In this document: piece after piece, positions 3,001 through 56,262 of the stretch
Layout: each line of letters opens with the position of its first letter
Position numbering within the stretch: position 1 is the first letter of the stretch
From: Trichosphaerium sp. ATCC 40318
Taxonomy: Eukaryota > Protista > Tubulinea
Length of the DNA: 64,000 nucleotides
Assembly (NCBI GenBank): GCA_038496445.1
Contig: JALMLS010000556.1
Coordinates: 1-64,000, forward strand
Direction of reading: 5' to 3'
Translations under genes and position numbers: made by a program
The notes under the pieces: generated by a model
Databases searched by the model: none
What the model was told of the DNA's origin: nothing
The model's input: only the letters and a program-made list of their open reading frames with translations

Positions 3001-5192
3001 ACGTTTCTTATGATGTTATTTGCTCATATTTTATACTAGGGAGGCGCTAAACTACCTACCGATAATGTCGTTGTGAGGAGAGTTTATGGTTTGAAGGTAT
3101 TAGTGTTAAGCAATGATGCTGAGTTGGCGAACAAGTTATATCAGGATGTTGTTGATAGAGGACATGAATGTATTATTAGCCGTATAAGAAAACCAAAAGA
3201 GCTCACATACGTCAGTAAAGGGTCTTGTCATAGTGATAGAGACTTAGTACTTTATCATATAAACTTGGACATGAAAGATATTGAGCTTGCTTCACCAACT
3301 GTACGCCAAAACCCAAGTTTCTCTTTTTTCTTCATTAGAAATTCCACGTGTTTAAATTTTTTTTTCGCGCGTAGAGTCCTTGACTGTCTTTGTATTCTAT
3401 AACTCATACTGTGTCTCTTTAGGCAAGACCTATTATAGCTCTATCTTCGAATCCAAGCAAGGAAGAAGAGGAAGCTGCCATTAAACTTGGGTTTGCTGAG
3501 TATGCTGCTATGCCTATTACAAACCAAAAGCTTGAGACTATTCTTCATGAAGTTGAACGTAAACGTGTGCATTCTGTTAATGAGACGCATTTTAAACAAC
3601 CAAGGAACCTATATAAACTTGAGCGTGAGTTCGAGAGTCTAAGACAACTGTTCAGGTACAATATTATCAGTTTTTTACTGTGCTCTTTTTTTTTTTTGCC
3701 ATGCCTCACACCTGTGTTTAGTAAATTCATTCCAATGGAGTATCAGCAACTTATTGCTCCAAGAGGTCTTGATTGTGTTAAGCTAGGAGATTATAGGTTC
3801 GTTTTAGTTCAAAAAATGAATGTTGAACCGTTTGTTTCTTCTTTTTTTTCTCTTTTTTTTTCGAGTTTGTGGAGCTCTACCTATCGCCTAACGTATAGTT
3901 TTGCAATGCAATACAGCAGAAATAACTTGATTTTGATCAGAGATAGGGTTTATACTAATTGTTCGGTTAGGAGACATCGTATTACTGTATTGTTCAGTGA
4001 TATTCGAGATTTTACAACTATGACAGAAGATATGGATCCTAAAGATGTTATTGAATGGATTAATAATTACAACGCCTTTGCTATAGCACCTATTTATCAG
4101 TATGGTGGATTTATAGATAAATTCATTGGAGACTCAATAATGGGTATGTACCAACAAAGTCAAACAGTGTCAACAACAAAAAGTTGGAGCATAATTTTTT
4201 TTTTTCCTTTGCATGCTTACTAACACTCTGCTCTTAGGTGTGTTTGCTAGTGATACAAGAACACAGCAAGAACGGTACAGTGACATTTTTTATTGTTTTG
4301 TTTGTTCAAGTGCATTGGCTGAGACTGTTTAGCGCCTTGTCTGCTGTTAGATGTGCCGTCAAAATGATTGAAAACCTGAATAAAATGTCTGCATCTTTAC
4401 CTACTCTTAAAAGCGAGACTGGTATTGGTGTAAACACCGGAGATGTTATTATTGGTCTTATCGGTACTGATACACGTATGGAGACTACTGCACTTGGAGA
4501 TGCTGTAAATCTTGCATCGCGAACTGAGTCGCTTTGCAAAAAGTAAGTTATCTTCATTTTTTTTTTGGTTTGTAAAAGGCTTACAGCTCCTCATAACCTG
4601 GTTTGTAATTTTCTTGTAGATACAAAGCAAGGATTCTCATTACAGAGAGTACAAAGGCTGATATGGGTGGAAACGCAAATGACTTTGATCTACGTCTTGT
4701 AGACTATGTTTTTGTAAAAGGTAAAAAAAAGCCTTGTAAGATATACGAAGTAATGGATGCTGATCCGTACGTAACCACCCCCAAGCTTACTCAAAATAAT
4801 TCGAAAGCTATAAATACATGTACTAAAACCTACACAGACCTGAAATTAAAGAAAAGAAGCTAGCTATACTCACCAATTTTAACCAAGGTGTCGAAAGTTA
4901 TAAAAACTCACAGTTGGCGAAAGCCAAATCTTGGTTTGAAGTACGTCAATCATACAATGACTCCAGCAAATGCCTTTTTTGAATGTCATATCTTTGTACT
5001 TAAAAACAACCACGTGTTTTTTGTTTTTTAATGTCTTGTCACCAATGCTAATTTTTTTCTTTTTTTTTTTTGTAGAAATGTCTTGAAGTCTACCCTGAAG
5101 ATGAGCCTACAAAAATACTTCTTGAACGTGTTGTTAAAGGTCTAGAAGATCCAACTAATTTCAAATCTGTTACAGCTTTGAATTCGAAATAA
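1..5192 (+). CDS. Hybrid histidine kinase (HATPase_c) - four receiver domains - class III adenylyl cyclase; 5' end lies before the window; multi-exon
   Basis: Spliced translation gives HATPase boxes (QLIDNALTFT, DTGTGI, IFHQF, GVGLGLATC), a canonical REC (VAEDS...LMDCLMPVMDG...ALSA...IKP, ~1630-2140), three further REC-like units, and cyclase motifs FSDIRDFT, DKFIGDS, GIGVNTG, ETTALGDAVNLASR, VKGK. Stop TAA at 5190-5192. Apparent frameshift near 275-285. Confidence 0.85.
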
Positions 5193-5435: not shown

Positions 5436-6195
5436 TTATTTCTCACAAACAACTTTCAAAGGTGACTTTAACAGTCGGTTACCATCAATCCACATACACT
5501 CTTCCTTAAAAAATCCATTCCTATGCCATAGTCTAGTCTTGCCATGCCGTTTACCATCAGCCCACATGCTGCGTTCCTTAAGTTGTCCGTTATAATACCA
5601 TTTCATTCTTTTACCAAACAGTTTACCATCAACTAAAAAGCATTGTTTCAAAAGTTGTCCACTCTCAAGCCAATATTTGAGTTTGCCATGTCGTTTACCA
5701 TCAATCCACATACACTGCTCCTTAAGTTGTCCATTTTCATGCCATGATTTACACTCACCATGTTTGTTATCATCAATCCACATACACTGGTCCTTAAGTT
5801 GTCCGCTTGCATACCATGTCTTACTCTCACCATGTAGTTTATTATCAATCCACATGCCCTGCTCTTCAAGTTGACCATTTTTATACCATCCCCTAGATTC
5901 ACCATGCTGTTTATCATTAGAAAATGTCCACTGTTCCTTAAGTTGTCCGTTGCATACCATACCATCCCTTAGCTTCTCCATGCTTTTTACCATCAACCCA
6001 CATCCACTGTTGCTTAATTGTTCCACTTTTATACCACTGTATCCATGGTCCTTTCTTTTTTAATGCCTCATTAAAATGTGTATTGATTGCTGCTCTTTTT
6101 GATAGTGTATGAAACTTTGTAAATGCTTCCATGTTGAAAGTACAAATATACTGTTGAAGTTCACGTGGGATATCTAATAAACTCACTGAGTCCAA
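5436..6195 (-). pseudogene. Intronless F-box-like N-terminus + MORN-variant repeat protein, frameshifted
   Basis: N-terminal SLLDIPRELQQYICTF followed by ~24-aa repeats (HGESKTWYASGQLKDQCMWIDxK). Two overlapping ORFs (5938-6195, 5436-6026) are joined by a frameshift at TGGTATGGTATGC (~5950-5966). No in-frame ATG (TTG at 6195, in-frame TAG upstream). Confidence 0.7.
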
Positions 6196-23048: not shown

Positions 23049-26000
23049 ATGACGGATACGCAACTTTTGCCCTCAACAGGTGAAAAACAGTGCTAGCACG
23101 TGTTTTGTTAACAATGTTAGAACGAAACAAAAAACTCGACGAAATTGATGTTGTTGATAACAACGGCGACACAGCTTTACTCCGGGCAGGTAATTTCGTC
23201 TCCGAGCTTTAATAAAATATGAGTTCATCACCATTTAGTCCGGGACGGAGATAATGAAACTGTATCAAAACTGATCGAAGCCAAAGCGAATATTGAGGCC
23301 CTTGATAAATACAAGCTCACACCTTTACTTCGGGCAGGTAATGTCACAACATACTCAATAAAAGTAGTAACTTACAACACCTTTTAGTACAAAAAGGACA
23401 CAATAAAATTGTATTAAAGCTACTCGAAGCCAATGCAAATATGGAGGCTGTTGACAAGTATGGTTGTACACCTTTACTTCAAGCAGGTAATGTCACATAC
23501 TAGAATCAACAAATGACCTTCCACATAGTCTATTATAAGCACATTCAAATCGTATCAACGCTAGTCAATGCGAAAGCTAATATTGAGGCTGTTGATAACC
23601 AAGGAAATACAGCTTTAATTAAGGCCGGTAAGAGAGCAGAATATAGCATAGGAGATAACTTGTGACTTACATACATTTTAGCGGACCTTGGAGACATCAA
23701 AGTAGTGTTAACATTGATTGGAGCAAAAGCAAACATTGAGGCTACCAATAACTCCGGACATACACCTTTATTTGCTGCAGGTGCTGTTTTATAAGCCAAG
23801 GCTTAAATACGTTACTTAAATTACTATTTAGCAATGGCAGAAAACTACAAAACTGTATCGGTATTAATCAATGCCAAGGCAAATGTTGATGCTGTTTGCT
23901 CTGGAAATACAATGTTGCATAAAGCAGGTGCCATTAGATGAATAAAATAAGTGTAACACTTATATTACCTTAGTTTGGAACGGCGATAACAAACTTGTAT
24001 CAATGCTTATCAACGCAAAAGCGAACATAGAGGCTGTTGATAAATTCGGTTTCACGCCCTTACTTCGAGCAGGTATTGTCATGTGTTGTACAGCAAATGT
24101 ATCTCACACCTCCAGCACAACTCGGAAAGATTGAAGCTTTGTCAATGCTCATCAAAGCAAACGCAAATGTTAATCCTGTTGATGAATTTGGAGACACAGC
24201 TCTACAAAGCGCAGGTAGGTATCACAAAGGTAATGCAAAACTCATCTTTAATGTAGCATACAAACGCCAATATGAAAGTGTATCAATTCTGATCAAAGCA
24301 AAGGCTAACGTTGAAGCTATTGATGAAGTTGAAGAAGATAGAAACAACAGCGATTCAGGTACTGTTTCAATCTGCTCTAAGAAAAAGTTTAATGGTTTTT
24401 TTTTAGTTATAAACCCAGACAATAAACAGTGGCAAAACTTTCTTCGCACGTTGTTTGAAGAAGTGGTATCAAACAATCTTGCTTCTGTTGATTCATTTGA
24501 AACTTTTCTAAAACACTGTCCCAGTGGTGAACAATGCCGTAAGCTATGGGACTCTTGTTCTGAGTACTCCGTCAGTAATCATGAGTGGAGAGAACAGCTT
24601 CAGAAATGGTTTCCTTCTTTAGTACGCTTTTGTTACAAAACACCTATGTGCTAATCATACAACCTACAGCCAACACATTCTCACTTTAACCTGGCTATGG
24701 AAAAAGGTATTTGTTACTTGATTTGTTTTGTATGCCATCCAACGGAAGCTTTATCTCCAGTACGATATATCCATAAATTGTTCATTTTAGGAAAATTAAC
24801 ACAAGCTCTTCCCAGGACTACTGGAAACGAGATGGACTCCTAATGCGAGGTATCTTGAATGATATGCCTGATACCGTATGGCATTATCAACATAAAAAGT
24901 CCATACAGAGACGATACACTACTGGAGGTAAGAAATGACTCTGCTACTCTTTTTGCTGACATACTGTAAGGAGTAAAAAGTAAGAAATCGTGGGATCTAA
25001 ATCCACGACTGAATTACGCACACAATTGGGATAGATCTAAAGCCACGTGCGTTGTGTTATATTTTTGGTGTCTTTTCTTATGTTTATTTATAAGTGGTGC
25101 GATTGTAAAAGCTACACACTACAGAACATTGAATCTTCTTGATACAAATGACAAAGTGGCTGTACGAGAATTACAGATACTCAAACAAGACATGACACAA
25201 CTGCATGGTCACAATGATTTTGATATTATTGAAGCAACTCTTGTATGCAATGATATCTTGACAGAAAACTTTGGTAGAGCGAACAACGTACTGAAACACA
25301 GACATCAGTACGTGTTATTGCACTTTATTTACACACTTTTAAAGTCTAATATGAACTTATTAAGAGACCTTCCCTACTTGTTTAAAAAGCAGGATTGGAA
25401 AAATGATATTCACAAGGACTACAAACAGAGTGTCTACAAAAAATACAATGCAATAATATCGCAAAACACTGACAAGTCATTAGAAGAGGTAAAACGAGTA
25501 TTATTCTAATTGTATTTGTGTATTTTGCTGTTCTAACCATGTTTGTTAAGGTGCCAGTGATATTGATGGTACATGGAACAAGTGAAAAAGCAGCGTACAG
25601 TATTGTAAAGGGTGGTTTTGGAACTGTGAGTGCTTTGGATGCTGGATACTACGGTCAAGGCATATATTTCACAGTACGCTAAAAATAGCTGATTACCATG
25701 TGCTCATATTCACTTTTTTTACCCAAAAGAGGAGTATACAATATGCTTGTTCATACGACACTTCAGGAAAGGATGAAAAAACACTTATCTTGACCCTTGT
25801 AACTCCTGGGAATGTATATCCTGTAAGTAAACTATAGCGTTGGCTGCACAATAACCATTGCCATAGGTCAAACAACAAGAAAACTTAAGAGGACAGCCAA
25901 TAAAACCAGGCTACCAAAGCCATTACGTATTGGTAGATCGTTTAGGTAAACCTCTCAGAGACAAGAAAGTTGCCAATGCAGTCTATGATGAGCTTGTTGT

Positions 26001-26576
26001 TTCGCAAGGTACTAGCATATAAAATGTCATTACATTAACTGCTTATGATTAGATACTCAAGCTATCGCACGTTATATAATTAAAGTAAAACGGAAAGAGA
26101 TCAATAGTCAAAAGAAGAAAAAAATTGAACGAAAAGATAAGAAGAAGAAAGGTAACCAAAAAGAAGATAAAGTCACAGAAATAGATTCAGATGATGAACT
26201 CTCCGACACAGACGATGACAATTTTATTTCAAATAGGTATTAAATACTGTAATGGCCTACCTTTAACTTTAATGCGTCACTGTCTAGAAAACTATGGGGT
26301 TCTAATATGGACGCAACTGACGAACAACAATCACCTAAAAATGTTAAGGTCGAGAAAGAAGTAGAATCACAGGAAGCAATCCATGACATTGAGAAAGTAA
26401 ATAAGGTCAATGTAAGCTTAGATGAGAATTTAGCTAAACCTAAAACAAAGCAAGAAAAACATATTGCCGCCTTAACAGCAGAAATTGCAAAATTGACAGA
26501 GAGTGTAGCCAATATGCAGGAGCGCAATGCGTCTCTATTAGCCAGACTAGCTCAATATGAAAGTCCAACACAGTAA
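23049..26576 (+). CDS. Ankyrin-repeat / PARP-like ADP-ribosyltransferase / coiled-coil protein, paralog A (~8 ANK)
   Basis: ANK exons 23239-23337, 23388-23486, 23529-23627, 23682-23780, 23832-23927, 23974-24072, 24116-24214 plus flanking half-units. ART motifs VHGTS (His codon 25572), GYYGQGIYFT, QYA, GYQSHY, DELVV (Glu codon 25990), QAIARYII. Confidence 0.85.
25217..25825 (+). repeat. Near-identical inverted tract shared with 27556-28164 (gene-conversion-like)
   Basis: About 609 bp with only a handful of substitutions by eye, spanning three introns; flanks clearly diverged. Confidence 0.9.
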
Positions 26577-26826
26577 CCACTATGATAGTAGTGCTCAAAC
26601 AAACTAGAAAAATAAAACAAATTGCGTTTTAAATGTGTTAATGGGACTTGACCTAAATCACGTGATGGCTAGGTTTTCTTATTTATACGTAGGGTATTAA
26701 TACGATCAAAGTTTTCGCTTAATGTTCGATGTGGTAGCAAGTATTAATACGCTTTGGGAATGGCAGTAAAAAAGAAGAGTGTAAAAAAGATAATCTATTT
26801 ACTACAACAGAGCTCACAAAGCTACT

Positions 26827-29800
26827 TCACTTCTCGTCACATTCAAGGCGGGCAAGTCTATCCAATAAGGTAATCAATCTTTCCTTTATGGCGTCGTTGC
26901 TTTTTTCTAAGTTTGTAATGCATTGTTGCTGTTTTGCAAATGCTGTCTTTAACCTTTCATTAGTTTGTTTGAGATTCTCATCTTTTTTGCAAACTTCTTT
27001 TTCGATATCGACATCAAGGGTTGGTTGTTTGTCAGAAGAGTCCAAATGGGATCCCCACAGTTTCCTTGTGTATATTTAAATGAAAAAGAAAAAATTATGA
27101 TGTATTTACCGGCTACTAATAACGTTGTCATCATCAGACAATTCATCATCTGAAATGTTATCACCTCCACTTTTGGAGGGTTCCTTGTTTGTTTCTTCTT
27201 TGGCGATTCTTTTATTGCTATTTTTCTCCTTCCTCATAACTTTAATGATATAGCGAGGGGTAGCTTGAACATCTGAAGGTATTATTAGCAATAGAATCTT
27301 ACTTGATAGAAGACGCTGATTAAACCAGAAAAAATATAAATATGATAAAGAAAAATATGTTTGATTGTACCTTGTGCAACAACAAGTTCATCGTACACTG
27401 CTGTTTTTAGTTTATCTTCTTTCAAAGTCCTACCTAAACGATCTACCAATACGTAATGGCTTTGATAGCCTGGTTTTATTGGCATTCCTCTTAAGTTGTT
27501 GTTAACACTTACCTATGTTGGATTAGTTTACATGCAAGGAAAGGTGCTGGTTGCGTACAGGATATACATTCCCAGGAGTTACAAGGGTCAAGATAAGTGT
27601 TTTTTCATCCTTTCCTGAAGTGTCGTATGAACAGGCATATTGCATACTCCTCTTTTGGGTAAAAAAAGTGAATATGAGCACATGGTAATCAGCTATTTTT
27701 AGCGTACTGTGAAATATATGCCTTGACCGTAGTATCCAGCATCCAAAGCACTCACAGTTCCAAAACCACCCTTTACAATACTGTACGCTGCTTTTTCACT
27801 TGTTCCATGTACCATCAATATCACTGGCACCTTAACAAACATGGTTAGAACAGCAAAATACACAAATACAATTAGAATAATACTCGTTTTACCTCTTCTA
27901 ATGACTTGTCAGTGTTTTGCGATATTATTGCATTGTATTTTTTGTAGACACTCTGTTTGTAGTCCTTGTGAATATCATTTTTCCAATCTTGCTTTTTAAA
28001 CAAGTAGGGAAGGTCTCTTAATAAGTTCATATTAGACTTTAAAAATGTGTAAATAAAGTGCAATAACACGTACTGATGTCTGTGTTTCAGTACGTTGTTC
28101 GCTCTACCAAAGTTTTCTGTCAAGATATCATTGCATACAAGAGTTGCTTCAACAATATCAAAATATTTGTAGCCGTGTAGTTTTGACAGCTTTTCTTTGA
28201 GTATGTTTAATTCTCTTACAGCCACTTTATCATTTGTATCAAGAAGATTCAGTGTCCTGTAATGAGTCGGCTCTGAAATTAACCCTCTTGTTTTCAGTTA
28301 AAAATACATTCTTTAACATCGTTTTTATAGTACTCACTTGGCTTTAGATCTGTCCCACTTGTATGCGTAATTCAGTCGCGGGTTTAGATCCCATGCGTTT
28401 ACGCTATTTAATCCTTTCTGGCCTTCATTTGTTTCTTCTAGATGCGTGAGTTGATCTTTATTACTCCACATGGTGTCTGGCAAGTCATACAAGATTCCTT
28501 GCATTAAATCTCCGTCCTGTTCCCAAAAATCCTGGAACAGGTGTTACTTATTGGATAGATTTTAAAAACTTGTCAATGCCGTACTGGAGACAATACAATT
28601 TTGGGTTCAAATGTACAGATTAACTGACAAATGCCTTTTTCTATTGCCAGTTTAAAATAAGAGCGAGTTGGCTGTTGGTTGCTTGATTAGTTAAAAATTG
28701 TACATAGTTTTGAGATAGCTTACCAAGAGTGGTAACCAATCTAGGATAGATTTTCTACAACATAAATGTTTCCACAACTCATCACAAGGTTGATCACTTG
28801 GAATATGTTTTAAGAAAAGTGCAACCAATTCTTCATCGTTGTTATAGTTATAGTATAAGATAAGACTTAAAAAGTCTTGCCACAGTCTCTTTTTAGGTGA
28901 GATGTGTCCTCCAGTTGCTTTCAATACAATACGAAGCAACTGCTCTTAATAAAAAACAGTAGTGAGTAAAGTAATCTGCTGTATTTAAGTACCTAAAGCA
29001 ACTGAAGTTGAATTTTTGTATTCATCAACAGGATCAAACTTAATATTTGCCTGTGCCTTGATTAACATCGGAATCAGAAAACAGTTATGGTTCTTGACTA
29101 ATAGCATGTTAGGTAATTAAATAATTCTACTCTTGTGTGATATCACCTGCCACAAATAAAGCTGTGTCTCCTTTGTTATTAACAATAGCAACATCAATGT
29201 TGGCTTTGATTACTATTGATACTGTTAAAAAATCATGTTCATCTCTACGTTTACAACTTAGAGCTAAGAGTAGTTAATATCTAGCTGATATCAAGCCGAA
29301 TCATGACTTCACCTGCAATGTGTAAAATTGTGTTTCCACGTTTATCAACAGCATTAATATTTTCACTGGCTGCAAATAAAGTTGATAGAGTTTCATTGCA
29401 TTCTTTCGTTGTTACTAAAATGGTTCTTACTAAATATTGTGGTTGAATTAGATATAACCTGCGTAATGTAATGCTGTGCTTCCATCATTATCAACTATGT
29501 CAGTATTTGCCCCTGCTCCAATCAACATAGAACACACTTCTAAATCTCTACAACGACATACTAGAGAATGTTAAGGGATAGGTAATACAACATGTATCTT
29601 GTAGTATTACGTGAACAAATCAAAGCTGTTTTTCCATCTTTGTTAACAGCATCAGTATTTGCGTTAGCCTTGAGAAGCATTGATACAATTTCTTTGTAAC
29701 CATTTCCTAAATCAATGAGAGGTACTCCTTGGCACATGTGATACATCACCTGTTTCTCCCAAATGACTTCTGTATGCAAGGTCATATTTGTTTCCATACA

Positions 29801-31520
29801 TTGCTACAAAATGTAAGTCATTGTGTATGTTTATCATGGCATACCTGCTTCAATTAATGCTGTATTTCCGTCATTGTTAGTGGCATTAATGAAAGCATTT
29901 GCCTTCAATAATATTTTCACCACTTCCTCATAACCATGTCTTGCTAAAAGTGGCAATGAGTTACACTTAAAGTTGATAAGTCAACATCACCTGCAGTAAT
30001 TAACGCCGTGTTTCCATTGTTGGTAACAGCGTTAATATCCACATTTGCTTTTACCAGTACTGATACTACTTTACTGTGTCCACGTTCCGCTACAAGCAAG
30101 TAAGTTGTGATTATGTTGTATGTCATCTTGTGAGTGTACCTGCGATATATAAAGGCGTTTCTCCATCGTTGTTAGCAGCATTAATATTTGCATGCTCTTT
30201 CATTAATAGTGACACAATATCATCATTGCCATGCCAAGCTTAGATTATATGAGTGAAAGTACATTTCTTCTATGTTGTAAGTGATGTACCTGCCCACATT
30301 AAAGCTGTCATTCCATTTTTGTCCACAACATTGATTTTTGCTTTAGCATTTAATAATACTGATACAATTTCACTACATCCCACTAAATGATTATGAGTTA
30401 CAGGTCTAACATTTTATAACACGATGTAGTAAGTCATAATTTTTTATCGTCTGTACACTTACCACCACACATCAAAGCTGTAGTTCCATAATCATTAACA
30501 GCATCAACATTTGCATTTGCTGAAATAAGAAGGGAAACAATTTCAATTTCATGTTTTCGTACTAAGAGTACAGTAAGAGGTAGAGTTAATATCATCTTGT
30601 GAAATTACCTGCACGTATCAACGCTGTATCTCCGTATTCAACAGTAGCGTCAATATTTGCATTTCCATCGATTAATATTGATACAACCTTACTGTGCCCG
30701 TTCATTGCTAAAAGCAGCAATGTCACAAACAGCATATTTTTACGTCTTGTCTTGTTTTAGTACCTGCAAGAACCAAAGCTGTATTTCCATAAGCGTTGAT
30801 ATTTGCATTTGCATTTACCAACATTGACACAATATCATAATGGCCTTCATGTGCTAAAAAGCTATGTTGAGTTGTCAAACAGTATCTTTGTGAAACTTAC
30901 CAGCAAACATTAAAGCTGACCATTCACGATCACGATCAACAGTATCAACATTTGCGCCCGCTTTAATTAGCAGTGATACAGTATTACTATGTCCTTTTCG
31001 TGCTAAACAGGTAATGAGAATTGATTTATGTGTTTGTCAAAACTTACCTGCAATACTTAAAGCTGTTTCTTCTGTATAAATCTTCATTTTAGATGGGAAC
31101 CTGCGATTAGCTGCAGTGTTTGGATTTGCGTTCGCTTTGAGTAGAATTGATACTGTGTCACTATGACCATTATATGCTAAAGGTTAAAGTAAGTTACAGT
31201 TACTGCATCACCAGGATCATGTTTAAGGCCGTTCAATTGAAATTAACTAACACTTTCAAAGAAAAAAAAAAGGTGGTTATGGCCACTCTATTATTTTTCT
31301 TTACGTAACCTGCGTAAATTAAAGCTCTCCCATCATCACAATTAACATCAATATTTTGTTTAATAATATCCGATAGTATGTCGTTTTTGCCATCACTTGC
31401 TAAGGAAGGTGAACAAATATTACCTCACCTAATTTATTTACCTGCATTCACTAAAGCGATTTCCTTTTGCGAGTAGGTCATCGTATCTACAGCGATCTTT
31501 TTGCCTTGAAGATCCGCCAT
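26827..31520 (-). CDS. Ankyrin-repeat / PARP-like ART / coiled-coil protein, paralog B (~15-16 ANK)
   Basis: ATG 31520; ~15 internal phase-1 ANK exons between ~31400 and ~29145 (one truncated, ~29750-29803); same middle domain; HGT, GYYGQGIYFT, YA, DELVVAQ; coiled-coil end ...LLDRLARLECDEK*. Confidence 0.85.
27556..28164 (-). repeat. Second copy of the near-identical inverted tract (partner of 25217-25825)
   Basis: Reverse complement matches 25217-25825 including intron sequence. Confidence 0.9.
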
Positions 31521-32163
31521 GGTGTATGTACTATTCTTACAGAATTCTATCACTTATTAGCACGTGTCGGTCTGAATGTTGAGATAAAACAACAAAATAC
31601 AAAATGGAATTTATCGCGTGAGTACTAAAATATGCCATCTCGAAAAATCTTGTGTTTTTAAGTTCTGTTAAAAGGATAATAATCGATGATTTGTGGCTAA
31701 ATTTATAGAATTCGTATGCGTAAGTATGGTAATAACGGGAAGAACAAAAATAGCCAAATAAAAACGCCTAAAATAATCGAAAAAATTTGTTATTGGTTTT
31801 TCCTAGCGCTAAATTTTATTCGCTTTGAGTCGTTTTCTTCTACTCTATTTCTCTCCGTGCCTTTAGGTGTATTTAAACAACTAACTCAAAAGTTAATTAC
31901 CCTATCACTCCTGATATATCGCGCAGAAGTTGGTTTATGCGATGCTTACGTCTACGAAAAAATCACGTGATACCTTTTTTACGCTAATTTTTTCCGAATA
32001 AAACCGTAGAAATCAATACAAGTATTAACTCTCCGCGAGATTAACATATTTATCCTTACGTCCAACCATTAACAGCGTTACGGTAAACTGTTTACCGTAC
32101 ACACTAACAATCATCATACTTTTCGGTGTAATTTTAAAACAACTACGCTAGTGACAACGCGTT

Positions 32164-35100
32164 ATGGCGGAAACACCAGGCAAAGAAAACCCAAATAATG
32201 CGACAGATTTACTCCACGCAGGTAACAGCAGGAAATACATTAATTCTTTCTCATGGCTTGCCTGTAGTGCGTACTGGGGATATTAAAATGGTTTCGTCAA
32301 CTTTACTAAAGGCGGATTCGAATAGTGATATTGATGCCCTTGATATTAAAACTGGAGAAACAGCTTTACATTGTGCAGGTAATATCAGCGTCACACGTGA
32401 CGTAATTGCGAATAAGTAAACTTATTTTTTTGTATTTTGTTAGCCAAAGAAGGATACAGTTTAATTGTGTCTGCATTACTAAACGCAAATGCAAATATTG
32501 ATGTTGTTGATAACCGCAAATTGACACCTTTGATGTGGGCGGGTAACATATCAGGCGAGATACAACGTTAACTCATCATTGATTAGCACAAAATGGACAC
32601 AATGAAGTTGTATCAATACTAATCAAAGCCAATGCAAATGTTAATGCTGTTGATGAACATGGATGGACAGCTTTGATGTATGCAGGTAATATCACAGATA
32701 CAATGTGCAACTCACATCGCCATTTAGAACAAAAAGAAACTGTATCCTTACTAATCAAAGCCGATGCTGACGTCAATGCTGTTGATAAAGACGAAAACTC
32801 AGTTTTACTTAATACAGGTAATATTGTTGTGTCATAACTGCAGCTTGCTCAATTGCCTTAGTGCGCGGATGCAAACCATGTACAGTAGAAATTGTGTCAA
32901 TGTTGATTGCAGCAAAGGCCAATGTTGATGCTACTAACAAACGAGGAGAGACAGCTTTACTTTGTGCAGGTGAAAGTCACAAGTTTTTCTTAACTTAAAC
33001 AAGTCACACTTTCTTTTAGCTCAATACGGTAACACCAGTATTGTTTCCGTGTTAATAAAAGTAAACGCAAATATAGAAGTTGCTGATAAAAAATATGGCA
33101 AAACAGCTTTACTTTATGCAGGTAACGTGCTACAAAAAGTATTTTACACTTATTTTATTTGTTTGTAAAAAAAAAAATGCTTGCCCTTATGAAGTCACAC
33201 AAAGACCTATAGTATTTTCGCATCCTTCAGTGCATTTAATTAGTAAAAATCTTCTTTTGCACTCATGCGACAGTACCAACAGCCACCAACAAAACTAGCA
33301 TTACAGCGTATAGCGAGAAAAAACCTTACCTTTTTATACTTTGTGGTTGGGCGTAGAGTAGTAATTCCGTACACGTACATTCCTCAAATATTCCTCAAAT
33401 ATTCCTCAAATTCTACATTCTAAATGACGTTCTCATTTTTGCTTTAGCTGATAACAATGGTGATAAGTTTACTGAAATTTGTTCAATGTTATTAAATGTA
33501 AAAGCGAATGTTGATGTTGTTGATAAACATGGCAAGACAGCTTTACTTTATGCAGGTAACGTCACTTCAAATACCATTCAAAACAATTGATTGACAACCT
33601 ATAGTGGAATGGAGTAACAACAAAGTCATTTCAATGCTAATCGGAGCAGGCGCAAACACCGAAATTGGAGTTGATAAATGCGGATACACAGCTTTACTTT
33701 ACGCAGGTAATACCACAACAGTCTGTACAACAGCTGTCACTCACCTTACAATAAAGCAAGTAATAAAAACTCAGAAGCTGTGGCAATGTTAATTGAAGCA
33801 AAAGCAAACGTAAACGCTGCCACAAAACAAGGTGGAACAGCTTTATATTTTGCAGGTAACTGTGCTTAGCCCATAAATTCCAACTCACGTTTCCTTTAAG
33901 TGCAGTATAGTGAAGATGTTTTTGACATTTCAATGTTGCTAGCAGCAAAAGCAAATACTGAAGTTGTTGATTCATATGGAAATACGCCCTTAATTCTATC
34001 AGGTACCATGTCAAGTTCTTATCCAATTAATTTCGGTTAACTTATGTTGCCTGTAGTACAACAGGGATATAAAAAAAGGGTTTCAATGTTAATTCAAGCG
34101 AATGCAAATATAGACGCAAAGGATAAAGAAGGAAATACAGCTTTACATACAGCAGGTGGCACAACAGAATAAAAACTAGCAGCTGATACTGATATTTTCT
34201 TTAGTCCTCTATTCTCACCTTAAAGTTTTATCAATGCTGGTAAAAGCAAATGCCAATATTGATGCCACCAACAACGAGGGAGAGACTCCTTTGATCTATG
34301 CAGGTACCTTTGTATCACACGATAGACAAAACTTTTTTTTGAAACTCACTTTATTTTTAGCACGTTTAAGTCTTAGGAGTAGTTGTGAGGTGATGTCAAT
34401 CTTGATCGCAGGAAATGCAAACGTTGACGCAGCTGATAATGACGGAAATACAGCTTTATTTCATGCAGGTAACCTGACAGTCGTAAATAGTCTACAAGAA
34501 CTAACATTGCTGTAGTTAAAGAATATAACAATAAAGTTGTGTCTATGTTAATAAAAGCAAACGCCACTATTGACATAGCTAATAATAAAGGAGAGACACC
34601 TCTACTTTATGCAGGTGATGTAACAAGATATTAATATAGACTGTAACTCACTTCTTTCTACAGCGCATGCGGGCTTGAATGCAGTTGTGATGCTACTCAA
34701 AGCAATGGCGAATATTGCACCTATCAGCTTTGATGAAGAAACTCTTAATCATGGTGTGTTTGTCACTTGTTTGTAAATTGACCGAGGACTTATTTTGTGT
34801 TTAGATTCAGGAATAATGACTTCATTATTCTTCACTTTACTAAAAGAAACTGGAGGCATTTTGCCGTCTACAAAACTTTGGCAAGACTTTTTTCGAGTAC
34901 TGTTAATCAACATGATTCACTTACAAGAATCTGGGTCTGTTGAGTTGTTCATTAATGTTTTAAAACTCCTACCATATTTTCAACAATCACGTGATCTATG
35001 GCTCTCTTGTTCATACTTCAAAAGCAAACATAAATCAGGCAGAGATAGAGAGTTAACAGCGGCAGATATTAATACATGGCTGCAACAATTGGTATGCTAA

Positions 35101-37040
35101 GAATATACAGTACCTACTAATACATGCCCAGCCAACACGTTCTTATTTTGAACTGGCAATGGTAAAAGGTATTTGTCATTTAATTTGTACAATATGTGAT
35201 CCCAAGCTTGCATTTTCGCAAGTACGTTACCTGATAATAACACACAAACCAGAAAATCATTCAACAATATCTTCCTAACACTTGTTTTTTTTATTCTCCT
35301 CAGGATTTTTGGAAAGGGGACGGAGAATTAATGAAAGGTATTCTTTACGACCTTCCTAAAGACATGTGGGGTGATAATTCAGAGCAATATGACGATTTAG
35401 AAGCTACCAAATGCATTACAGGTAGGAAGTTAGTGTTTTGTACCTAGTTTTGTTTACAACAAACTGTAAGGATTAAAAAGCAAACACAGATGGGATATAA
35501 ATCCACGACTGAATTACTCATACAATTGGGACAGATCTAAAGTCACGTGCGTTCAATATTGTTGTATTTATTTTTAACTATGTAATTTTTTTTTAAGTGG
35601 GTTTGTATCAAATGCGACTCATTACAGGACACTGAACCTTCTTGATACAAGTGATAAAGTAGCTGTAAGAGAATTAAACATCCTAAAACAAGAATTGTCA
35701 ACAATGCATGGTTTCAACAAATACAATCTTGTAGAAGCAACTCTAGTTTGTAACGATATCTTGACTGAAACCTTTGGAAGAGCCAACAAACTATTGAAAT
35801 ACAGACATCAGTACGATATCCAAAAGAACAAATTATGGTATTGATTGCCCTTGTAATTCTAACCTCTATTTAAAGGGATCTACCAAGCTTGTTTAAAAAG
35901 CAGGAATGGAAGGAAGATAATATTAATAAGGATTACAGAGATGCTGTTTACCAAAAGTATGAGGCACTCGCTCCACAAAATGGATCAACTGATGCTGATG
36001 ACGCTTCAGCAGTAGATGTAAGTAGTCCTGCTCAAATCGTGCTTACAATCTTGTTTTTAGTTACCAGTGATATTGATGGTACATGGAACTAGTGAAGAAG
36101 CTGCGTACAGTATTGTAGCAGCTGGTTTTGGGACTGTGAGCTCTTTGGATGCTGGTTACTATGGTCAAGGCATTTACTTCACTGTACGCGAAAACCGTTT
36201 AAATTATGCACGTGCTCACATTTTTCTTTGAATATCAGAGGAGTATCAAATACGCTTGTTCACATGATGCCTCAGGAAAAGGAGAAAAAACCCTTATCCT
36301 AAGTTTTGTCACACCTGGCAATACATATCCTGTAAGTAATCAACATATAACACACGTTAACTTTTTTATCTTAAGGTCCATTCAAATGACGTCTTAAGAG
36401 GGAACCCAATAAAGCCAGGATACCAAAGCCATTACGCGTTGGTAGACCACTCAGGTAAACCTCTGAAAGAAGGGAAACTAAAAACAGCAGTGTACGATGA
36501 GCTTGTTGTTGCACAAGGTACAATCAAGAAACAAATGATATTTATTTAGTTCTTACTAATGATGAGTTCAGATAATCAAGCCATTGCTCGTTACATCATC
36601 AAAGTGGTATCGAAAAGAAAAGATATCGAGCCAAAGAAAAGCGATACAGCCATGAAGAAGAATATAAACATAAATAAACCAAATGAACAGGTTGTGTCTG
36701 GTAATAATTCAGATGACTCAGATGACGTATACAATTCTGATGACGACAACTTCATTAGTAGCCGGTAAGAATTACACTTCTATTCTTTTTGCTAATTGGC
36801 AATACAAGAAAACTATGGGCTTCTCATGTAGAGCCTGATGAAGAAGAGTCAAACAATAATCTCAATACCGAACAAAAACCAAGTAATGAGGATCTGGAGC
36901 AAGCCAACAGAAACTTATCCCACAGTATTGCAAATCAGAAAAAATACATTGCTGAGTTACAAGAAACCAACAATAACTTACAAGCAAGGCTTGCTGATGT
37001 TCTGGATAAAATAGCTCGCCTTGAAACTGGGAAGAATTAA
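32164..37040 (+). CDS. Ankyrin-repeat / PARP-like ART / coiled-coil protein, paralog C (~15 ANK)
   Basis: ATG 32164; 14 internal phase-1 ANK exons of 90-111 bp (32268-34614); VHGTSEEAAYSI, GYYGQGIYFT, KYA, GYQSHY, DELVVAQ; coiled coil to TAA 37040. Confidence 0.85.
33379..33411. repeat. 11-bp tandem repeat x3 inside an enlarged intron of paralog C
   Basis: (attcctcaaat)3. Confidence 0.85.
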
Positions 37041-54999: not shown

Positions 55000-56262
55000 A
55001 TGGCAACGGGTAGTAGATTGTGCGTATTTATTGCACTCTTGTGCATTACTTGCACTATTGCAGCAGAATACCAAGTAGATGACTACAAACTCGGTAATGG
55101 GCTAAATGATTCTCGTACAATCATCAACGCACTGCAAAGCATCCAACCAGGAGATACTCTTCTATTTTCTGAGCGTTTGTACAAAATTAAGCAACCAATC
55201 CTCATAGAAACGTCTGTACACCTCAGAGGCGTAGGATATAGTACTATTCTGCGATACACTGGCGACGTAGACCAGTACGGGCACTACGCAAACCTTTTGG
55301 GCCGCGCTATGCGAGTTGGAATACTTAACGTATACGCTGACGACGTTACTGTAACGGATATGACAATAGATCAAAACTTTAGAGGGTCTGGAAGGTCAGA
55401 TGGAGAGTCCGCGATAATAGGGAGTCTTCTTATCGGTGGCGCTTACACTGGCGCAAAGAAAAACGTCCATAACGTTCATGTTCGGAATATCCGATTTTAC
55501 GATTACTACGGAGACGCTTGTTCGAATCACTTGACAAAGACAATTGGAGCAATTATAGAGGACTGTAAGTTTATATCTTCTTATATCGTAGGAGGATGGG
55601 AAACTGCTGGTACCTTTGGGGAACAAGCCATCAGTTTCAGTGTTGGCGAGGATATCGTCATCAGAAATAACCTTATTCAAGGCGCACTTGATGACGCTAT
55701 TGCAATTCATCGATCGTCTTCTAATGTCCTTATCGAGAATAACTTTATATCTACCACTGGAGGACGTATTCTTGTTGGTGGTACAAATGGCGCTATTGTT
55801 ACTAACAATCGTATTGTTTATATCCAACAAGGAGCTTATGCTATTTTAATAACTTATGAACATCAAGCTCGTCACGTGACATTGAATAATAATATTCAAG
55901 TCACAGACAATACAATCATATCTAAAGACCGTGATAATCGGTTGTTCTCGACAGGTATCTTCTTATGGGCGTCTGGTGAAGATATAACTGTTACCGGTAA
56001 TAGAATTATTCAAGCAAGTGGATTAGGCGTTGCAGGTATAAGAGTAAAAGCTCGATGGCACGAAAGTGGTTGGTTCTCAACCAGGGATGCTACTATTACT
56101 GGTAATACTGTAAACGGGTTTACGCATGGTGTACGTGTACAACTACCTGAAGAAGATATTGATACTATTGACGTTGAGGGCAATATCTACGGAAATAATA
56201 TTAAATATGAGTACACTTCGTTAACTATGACCACAGAAAGTCCTACTCCAAACAACGCGTAG
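55000..56262 (+). CDS. Intronless secreted right-handed parallel beta-helix (pectin lyase-like) protein
   Basis: 420-aa ORF; signal peptide; G(N)GLNDSRTIINAL...GDTLLF start; IRNNLI/IENNFI/ITGNTV repeats; DDAIAI. Confidence 0.85.
   Translation: MATGSRLCVFIALLCITCTIAAEYQVDDYKLGNGLNDSRTIINALQSIQPGDTLLFSERLYKIKQPILIETSVHLRGVGYSTILRYTGDVDQYGHYANLLGRAMRVGILNVYADDVTVTDMTIDQNFRGSGRSDGESAIIGSLLIGGAYTGAKKNVHNVHVRNIRFYDYYGDACSNHLTKTIGAIIEDCKFISSYIVGGWETAGTFGEQAISFSVGEDIVIRNNLIQGALDDAIAIHRSSSNVLIENNFISTTGGRILVGGTNGAIVTNNRIVYIQQGAYAILITYEHQARHVTLNNNIQVTDNTIISKDRDNRLFSTGIFLWASGEDITVTGNRIIQASGLGVAGIRVKARWHESGWFSTRDATITGNTVNGFTHGVRVQLPEEDIDTIDVEGNIYGNNIKYEYTSLTMTTESPTPNNA

Follow-up and report, generated by a model that had tools for sequence, protein, structure and literature searches.

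The first 64,000 nucleotides of contig JALMLS010000556.1 of Trichosphaerium sp. ATCC 40318 (the window, to which all positions below refer; contig C83 of a 70.3-Mb assembly of 642 contigs) contain, at 23049-37040, a cluster of three intact, intron-rich paralogous genes, here named A (+, 850 aa), B (-, 1083 aa), and C (+, 1093 aa). Each of them joins an array of ankyrin (ANK) repeats to an ADP-ribosyltransferase (ART) domain of the PARP type. Probably, A, B, and C are members of a Trichosphaerium family of about 100 modular ADP-ribosyltransferases that share one mechanism. In this mechanism the N-terminal ankyrin array, built from a variable number of repeats with one repeat per symmetric exon, would offer a fast-evolving surface that selects a protein ligand. 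A helical, family-specific middle domain would connect the array to the enzyme, and the PARP domain with its histidine-tyrosine-glutamate (H-Y-E) triad would use NAD+ to put ADP-ribose, as a monomer or polymer, on the bound ligand or on itself. The C-terminal coiled coil would pair two chains in parallel orientation. According to the same proposal, the family would have grown by segmental duplication, often as inverted pairs; gene conversion would keep the enzyme half uniform, and selection would diversify the ankyrin residues in contact with the ligand.

Gene structure and expression

The cluster extends from the ATG of gene A (23049) to the final base of the gene C stop codon (37040). The spliced models of all three genes have the domain order that the original prediction had assigned to them, i.e., ANK(n), middle domain, ART, charged (acidic) linker, and coiled coil. 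Their frames are open throughout, and their GT-AG introns are mostly 40-65 nt long. Gene A (23049..26576, + strand) comprises 21 exons with 9-10 ankyrin repeats. Its ankyrin array (23121..24358) is followed by the middle domain (exons mid1-mid4, 24407..25046), the PARP-type ART domain (25095..26087, six exons), and a basic/acidic linker with the conserved motif SDDELSD.DDDNFISNRKLW that leads into the coiled coil (26088..26576). Gene B (26827..31520, - strand; 26-27 exons, ~1083 aa, ~16 repeats) lies tail-to-tail with A, and gene C (32164..37040, + strand; 27 exons, ~15 repeats) lies head-to-head with B. The start codons of the divergent genes B and C are separated by a spacer of 643 nt (31521..32163), which may be a shared promoter region. 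Overall, the arrays contain about 10-16 repeats, one per exon, and these ANK exons of 96-102 nt are separated by phase-1 GT-AG introns of ~45-55 nt. The model of A was derived from transcript joints, and those of B and C by transferring each A exon through phase-matched, AG/GT-bounded alignment.

All three genes are expressed as spliced mRNAs. For gene A, 13 GT..AG joints between 24215 and 26287 were found in contigs of the public runs X1, X3, and X4, which were examined over 24000-29999 and which, being spliced, are therefore transcript assemblies. The joints 28532-28584 and 28672-28723 of gene B, together with its uninterrupted exon 28531-28338, occur in contigs of X3/X4. Gene C is represented by P0001, a 450-aa open reading frame (ORF) on a JGI transcript contig that equals the last 444 residues of the gene C model, and this identity confirms eight further junctions. 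Spliced models backed by RNA data, which the original prediction had called for, are thus available for 13 introns of A, for parts of B, and for the tail of C. The first exon of A (31 nt) lies outside the transcript-covered introns and stems from the model, some borders of ankyrin exons in B and C beyond the read-supported joints were placed by exon transfer, and it is doubtful whether gene B has the 54-nt exon modelled at 29803-29750. Another family member, translated from contig C270, is matched residue for residue, over the stretch compared, by P0025 (MMETSP0405, taxid 498012), a protein from the transcriptome of Trichosphaerium sp. ATCC 40318.

Some peculiarities of splicing and intron length were also observed. 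In contigs of X3 and X4, a middle-domain exon of gene A lacks an internal stretch of 59 nt (24466-24524, GT..AG) that has been removed by splicing, which results in a frameshift and an early stop, and X1 retains this stretch. This event may represent unproductive alternative splicing. Two introns are unusually long compared to the norm of 40-65 nt: intron 33122-33447 of gene C (326 nt), which carries a threefold TCCTCAAATAT direct repeat, and intron 31177-31309 of gene B (133 nt). A decayed ankyrin exon was sought in both long introns, and none was recognisable.

The PARP-type catalytic domain

Introns hide the ART domain from ORF analyses, as the original prediction had noticed, and the spliced exons yield the motif string that it had proposed: VHGTS..AYSIV..GFGTVS.LDAGYYGQGIYFTRSI.YACS..TLIL..VTPGN.YPV..PIKPGYQSHY..VYDELVV.QD..ARYIIKV. 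The Pfam model for PARP (PF00644, cut-off 26.7 bits) matches the gene C product P0001 with 36.5 bits and the paralog P0002 with 30.9 bits, and the gene A exon bearing the histidine and tyrosine (the H-Y exon) reaches 18.7 bits by itself. The window is absent from the matches of a genome-wide PF00644 scan (E ≤ 0.01), since no exon is long enough to be matched by itself. The H-Y exons of A and B are 100% identical in DNA sequence, and their identity to that of C is 86%.

An AlphaFold2 model of P0001:45-340, based on a 42-sequence alignment of the wider clade described below, has a predicted local distance difference test score (pLDDT) of 85.4. In Foldseek, the top matches of this model are without exception catalytic domains of PARPs (PARP4, PARP1, PARP3, and tankyrases; E ~1e-10). 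Structural alignment by VIA-align gives Z-scores of 18.6 with PARP12 (175 residues, 2.5 Å) and 18.3 with tankyrase 1, and values above 18 are obtained also for PARP14, tankyrase 1/2, and PARP15. A structural comparison of the C-terminal region with PARP domains had been suggested as a check of the original prediction, and it is at this level of similarity (Foldseek E ~1e-10, VIA Z ~18) that the match was obtained. The VIA alignments cover 175-185 residues (root-mean-square deviation, rmsd, ~2.5 Å; model residues 34-283). The catalytic domain must then span six exons (25095-26087 in A) and take in an exon that at first sight appears to be 'pre-ART'. Ahead of the HGT strand, the model contains a helical insertion.

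Comparison of the family profile to the PDB matches PARPs only, namely PARP12, PARP13/ZAP, PARP4, and PARP10. In these alignments, the HGT of the family falls on HGT/HGS of PARP12 and PARP4, GIYF on their G(S/I)YF, and DELVV on DEFVV of PARP4. We take the Y of GIYF to be the triad tyrosine, by analogy to PARP1 Y896 and tankyrase 1 Y1213. The triad residues are H582 (25572-25574), Y613 (25665-25667), and E688 (25990-25992) in A; H839 (27809-27807), Y870 (27716-27714), and E945 (27389-27387) on the minus strand in B; and H841 (36082-36084), Y872 (36175-36177), and E947 (36499-36501) in C. Among the sampled paralogs, the respective motifs are conserved in 33 of 34 (HGT[ST]), 34 of 34 ([IV]YF), and 35 of 36 (DE[LM]V) cases. 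Pfam, the predicted fold, and profile alignment to the solved PARP4 and PARP12 all identify the domain as a true ART of the PARP (diphtheria-toxin-like) type with an H-Y-E triad, in agreement with the initial assignment. The ART domains of A, B, and C are presumed to be catalytically active. The initial proposal of a conserved, NAD+-consuming effector holds for the conservation of the enzyme half. It does not hold for a simple burning of NAD+, as an H-Y-E PARP would be expected to transfer ADP-ribose to targets instead.

Family size and distribution

The genome contains ~103 strong copies of the H-Y exon (E < 1e-13) and ~100 copies of the first ART exon. The expansion is therefore not merely local, as had been assumed, but comprises ~100 copies genome-wide, often in inverted pairs. 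About half of the copies reside on contigs of ~65 kb or less. Some of those with equal scores could be haplotigs, which leaves the exact number of loci uncertain, albeit large. In all of the ~35 copies sampled for closer inspection the domain order is identical, and the number of ANK exons ranges from 1-2 to at least 20. Many members of the family form pairs or clusters, and the sampled copies are often in tail-to-tail or head-to-head orientation.

Outside this genome, the first ART exon retrieves two true clusters only when searched against 1.84 billion representative proteins, both of them Trichosphaerium-type transcripts. A third match, P0003, is an animal adhesion-receptor repeat protein and was judged spurious. 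A wider clade of 43 proteins, mostly from metagenomes and other transcriptomes, shares the signature GFGTVSSLDAGYYGQGIYFT...PGN...GYQSH...DELV. Some of its members have Q in place of H, P0020 bears leucine-rich repeats, and P0049 has ankyrin repeats. When a viral origin was sought in IMG/VR with the family alignment, 17 pattern matches were obtained and none was confirmed as a relative. On a metagenome contig from ENA (L026, 6263 nt), a distant relative of the ART clade is encoded as two inverted 295-aa ORFs (1521-2408 and 3809-4696), an arrangement that echoes the inverted gene pairs of the Trichosphaerium genome. The publication of the Trichosphaerium sp. draft genome (70.87 Mb, 37.7% GC) does not mention ankyrin, PARP, or ADP-ribosylation (PMC10521059), and a literature search found no publication describing the present family.

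Ankyrin arrays, gene conversion, and selection

Single ANK exons of B and C exceed the Pfam cut-offs of Ank, Ank_2, or Ank_4 on their own. Those of A match Ank_4/Ank with ~17 bits, which is below the cut-off, and the pattern recurs 9-10 times. In the paralog L027, the array after splicing (L027:2-784) reaches 130 bits with the Pfam ankyrin models. The repeats inside the arrays of A, B, and C are ~60% identical in nucleotides. Internally homogenised arrays, which are 80-90% identical at shifted registers, occur in the paralogs L008, L011, L019, L021, and L022. As proposed in the original prediction, the arrays are variable: they differ in length and sequence, and the enzyme half is conserved.

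Genes A and B are 250 nt apart and contain inverted-repeat arms of 717 nt (25114..25830 and 27551..28267) that are 96% complementary. The core of the left arm (~25308-25822) is 98-100% identical to B, three introns included, and the right arm is likewise read as part of a gene-conversion tract. Beside the tract, identity drops to 76-85% in the flanking exons and to 27-57% in the flanking introns. This pattern argues for a recent gene conversion between A and B that was limited to the enzyme core. A related segment is found on contig C147 (L004, G000:C147:58000-67900), which carries a 94.8% identical copy of window 25636-31836 and then three shorter pieces that extend to 33609. The copy includes a counterpart of B (B') and the beginning of a C-like gene; of an A-like gene, it has the 3' part only. 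Its left breakpoint is located inside the H-Y exon of A, and thus the A-like copy on C147 is a fragment. The breakpoint adjoins the position of the A/B conversion tract. Colinearity with the window is lacking in the left flank of the copy, and the C147 segment is probably paralogous rather than allelic.

Recently duplicated genes such as B and B' permit a comparison of the ankyrin and enzyme halves, for which we used the ratio of non-synonymous to synonymous divergence (pN/pS) in pairwise Nei-Gojobori analyses. The exons of B and B' are 95.3% identical versus 97.4% for the introns, the frame of B' is open, and all indels are in-frame. For this pair, pN/pS is 1.63 in the ANK array (83.5 non-synonymous and 14.5 synonymous differences), as compared to 0.49 for the middle and 0.40 for the ART domain (ANK versus middle plus ART, Fisher p 0.015). 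The strength of the signal lies in the positional concentration of the changes. At six contact positions per repeat, 29 of 87 codons show amino-acid changes as compared to 30 of 399 elsewhere in the array (Fisher p 3e-9). These positions, which correspond to the randomised contact positions of designed ankyrin binders, were mapped from the design of designed ankyrin repeat proteins (DARPins), and their register was checked against Pfam Ank. Here pN amounts to 0.149, which is 4x the array-wide pS and 5.7x the intron divergence. In a second pair, L010/L009 on contig C41, pN/pS is 1.59 for ANK versus 0.55 for middle plus ART (p 1e-4), and the ANK exons are 92.2% identical versus 96.4% for the introns. 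L021/L022 form a third pair, and L011/L007 were excluded from the analysis because their arrays are non-homologous. These comparisons indicate that the ANK exons (pN/pS 1.4-1.6 in the three recent pairs) are under diversifying selection focused on the ligand-contact residues and that the enzyme half, i.e., middle plus ART, is under purifying selection (pN/pS 0.4-0.55). The comparison of ANK and ART substitution ratios that had been recommended for the original prediction thus agrees with its concept of a variable repeat module and a conserved enzyme, and it further locates the ANK changes of recent duplicates at the ligand-contact positions.

Middle domain, coiled coil, and domains not detected

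Nothing in Pfam matched the middle-domain exons of gene A. The first 95 residues of the domain (P0002:1-95) are predicted to form six helices (pLDDT 88.5), and neither this model (Foldseek, best E 3.3) nor the profile of the middle domain (best E 0.28) has a match in the PDB. The ESM Atlas provided no lead, and structural matches there were only unspecific helical models. MAFFT repeatedly aligned the third piece of the middle domain (24816-24926) onto the first (24409-24621), placing DFWKQDG.LM.GIL.D.P.D.W on WQDF..V..F.TFL.H.P....LW, and did likewise in paralogs. This overlay could point to a helix pair that was duplicated within the domain.

Downstream of the enzyme, the tail shows the conserved acidic motif SDDELSD.DDDNF.S.RKLW and then heptad repeats, and the Pfam matches of the final exon of gene A are of the coiled-coil type only. 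For two copies of the gene C tail, a parallel, in-register dimer is predicted with an interface score (ipSAE) of 0.36 versus 0.00 for the best of 3 controls. Among 30 proteins solved as same-chain pairs, 21 reach a score of 0.36, and among 23 solved as single chains none does. The contacts agree to 100% among 3 runs, and the pLDDT of the partner is at least 71. These predictions suggest dimerisation through the coiled coil.

Domains typical of other ankyrin or PARP proteins were also sought with Pfam. A SAM domain was found neither in any middle-region exon of gene A (E ≤ 1) nor in P0001 and P0002, which cover middle, ART, and tail (E ≤ 0.1). This confirms the earlier impression that SAM is lacking, unlike in tankyrases, and hence A, B, and C are not tankyrases. 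WGR and PRD (PF05406, PF02877) have no match in the gene A pieces, P0001, or P0002, and the same is true for TIR, the enzyme being a PARP-fold transferase. No NACHT or NB-ARC NTPase was matched between the ANK array and the ART domain, and the three proteins are thus not NLRs either.

Two further reading frames of the window were noted by eye. One of them (5436-6026, - strand) contains a 196-aa run of GQLKEQ.MW.DGK.HG units that resemble the MORN type, and the other (55000-56262, + strand; 420 aa) looks secreted and similar to right-handed beta-helix proteins.

Possible functions and alternative explanations

A positively selected variable surface, a conserved enzyme homogenised by conversion, and many clustered copies together make it plausible that the ANK-PARP genes encode sensor-effector proteins. 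A binding surface under diversifying selection, coupled to an enzyme under purifying selection, characterises the evolution of recognition systems involved in genetic conflicts. The family-level signature therefore points to a recognition function in some such conflict, in which the ANK surface would bind the ligand and the opponents may be viruses, bacteria, prey, or non-self amoebae. More specifically, and only tentatively, the ~100 genes can be regarded as a germline-encoded recognition repertoire of novel design that combines receptor and effector in one dimeric chain without an NTPase switch. Each ankyrin surface would then capture a particular non-self protein originating from giant viruses, bacteria, or foreign amoebae, the H-Y-E PARP would ADP-ribosylate it directly, and gene conversion would keep the enzyme uniform. 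If this is true, ADP-ribosylation by a directly fused receptor would be added to the known designs of eukaryotic innate recognition, and the Amoebozoa, which are hosts of giant viruses and intracellular bacteria, would gain a candidate system of defence or allorecognition. The family also amounts to a library of ankyrin binders provided by nature, all on the same fixed scaffold, and it appears to illustrate clearly how gene conversion can affect just one half of a gene.

Several points weigh against the proposed mechanism or restrict its reach. Closer inspection of paralogs covered 24 of the ~100 loci (~35 copies). The H-Y-E triad is necessary but insufficient for PARP activity, and mono- and poly-ADP-ribosylation are indistinguishable from the triad. 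The repeats within the arrays of A, B, and C are old, as judged from their divergence, and do not form a freshly homogenised cassette system. The pN/pS ratios were obtained without site models and are based on 50-120 substitutions per pair. The excess over neutrality in the whole ANK array of B/B' is marginal (binomial p 0.04), and the ANK pN/pS of 1.36 for L021/L022 (p 3e-10) was calculated from arrays of unequal length, so that some of the aligned repeats may not be in register. No function can be recognised for the middle domain. Finally, the tail dimer is supported by the score of a model, which coiled coils can attain because the predictor has memorised solved examples.

Different biological roles can be envisaged for these proteins. 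As a special case of the proposed mechanism, the family may be an innate-immune repertoire, whose ANK surfaces recognise a protein of a giant virus or intracellular bacterium and whose PARP domains disable or mark the invader or the cell. This is possible, although we would not regard it as probable. It is in line with the large size, clustering, and lineage restriction of the family and with a predicted binding surface diversified by selection next to a conserved effector. Contact to giant viruses must be frequent, given that 1581 gene models of giant-virus origin have been reported for the Trichosphaerium genome (PMC10521059), and vertebrate PARPs evolve fast in host-virus conflicts (PMC4038475). 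However, an NTPase switch, a TIR domain, and a death-like domain are all absent according to Pfam, and the same selection signature would fit allorecognition or prey handling equally well. Allorecognition in particular could resemble heterokaryon incompatibility of fungi, with ANK surfaces that detect foreign alleles of other amoebae and a PARP that triggers rejection. The selection pattern is the same as in the repeat domains of fungal NLRs (PMC4986451), and Trichosphaerium is multinucleate with a complex life cycle (PMC10521059). Such a role is unlikely nonetheless, as B and B' are probably paralogs and not alleles (judged from the non-colinear left flank on C147) and the NTPase domain is missing.

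The combination of ANK and PARP follows the logic of tankyrases, and the proteins might also be housekeeping regulators whose ANK arrays recognise conserved partners within the cell and whose PARP domains govern the turnover of these partners through ADP-ribosylation. The retained H-Y-E triad and the expression of all three genes without a known stimulus would be consistent with this function. It is nevertheless hard to reconcile with ~100 copies, the absence of SAM, pN/pS above 1 at the contact positions, and the restriction of the first ART exon to two related clusters among the representative proteins searched; moreover, true tankyrases are restricted to bilaterians (Citarelli et al. 2010, PMC2964712). 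We thus consider a housekeeping role quite improbable. The weak Pfam PARP match (18.7 bits with one exon and 31-36 bits with the complete domain), the Q in place of H in some distant relatives, and the fragmented copy on C147 could be taken to mean that these are catalytically dead or NAD/ADP-ribose-binding pseudo-enzymes, or that the family expands neutrally, is derived from viruses, or is a selfish repeat. Nearly all sampled copies retain H-Y-E, though, and the enzyme half has a pN/pS of 0.4-0.55. Frames are intact, mRNAs are spliced, no relative was found among the viral contigs of IMG/VR, and intron structure and base composition are host-like. Degenerate or selfish elements are therefore a very unlikely explanation.

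Comparison with known systems

Tankyrases (PARP5a/5b, PARP clade 4) are similar to the modular ADP-ribosyltransferases of Trichosphaerium in that an N-terminal ankyrin array is combined with a C-terminal H-Y-E PARP domain. The catalytic domains of tankyrase 1/2 superpose on the P0001 model (Z ~18, rmsd ~2.4 Å, 21-23% identity), and in both groups an oligomerising element adjoins the enzyme, which in A, B, and C is the predicted coiled coil. SAM is absent from A, B, and C, which have a family-specific helical domain before and a coiled coil after the catalytic domain, and this domain moreover bears the helical insertion ahead of its HGT strand. Known PARPs with ankyrin targeting, such as the tankyrases, are encoded by one or two housekeeping genes in a genome, which are conserved, but the Trichosphaerium family has ~100 fast-diverging members. 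Ankyrin repeats and a PARP domain also co-occur in protists, Amoebozoa included, in the clade 1A ankyrin-WGR-PRD-PARP proteins of Dictyostelium, fungi, and ciliates (PMC2964712). As neither WGR nor PRD was detected, A, B, and C do not belong to clade 1A. In further contrast to that clade, their nearest solved relatives by sequence profile are PARP12, PARP13, PARP10, and PARP4 and not PARP1.

The best sequence-profile and structural matches are the mono-ART PARPs of clade 3 linked to antiviral functions (PARP12, PARP13/ZAP, PARP14, and PARP15). These enzymes have H-Y-I/L or degenerate triads and are targeted by zinc-finger, WWE, or macro domains, whereas the Trichosphaerium family keeps the glutamate and would be targeted by its ankyrin repeats. 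With regard to evolutionary mode, the closest parallel is offered by fungal NLRs, for which hypervariable ANK, TPR, and WD repeats have been described (PMC4986451). They too form large clustered families with a conserved effector part and with repeat changes focused at ligand-contact positions. Their homogenised repeat arrays have a counterpart in the paralogs L008, L011, L019, L021, and L022 but not in A, B, and C. Fungal NLRs possess NACHT or NB-ARC, which the ANK-PARP family lacks, and in the latter the repeats are N-terminal and joined to the enzyme via the helical domain. The analogy to NLR/TIR-type receptors drawn in the original prediction thus applies to the mode of evolution and not to the architecture, which contains neither an NTPase switch nor TIR. 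By analogy, the family resembles the antiviral mono-ART PARPs in its catalytic sequence and the fungal hypervariable-repeat receptors in the way it evolves.

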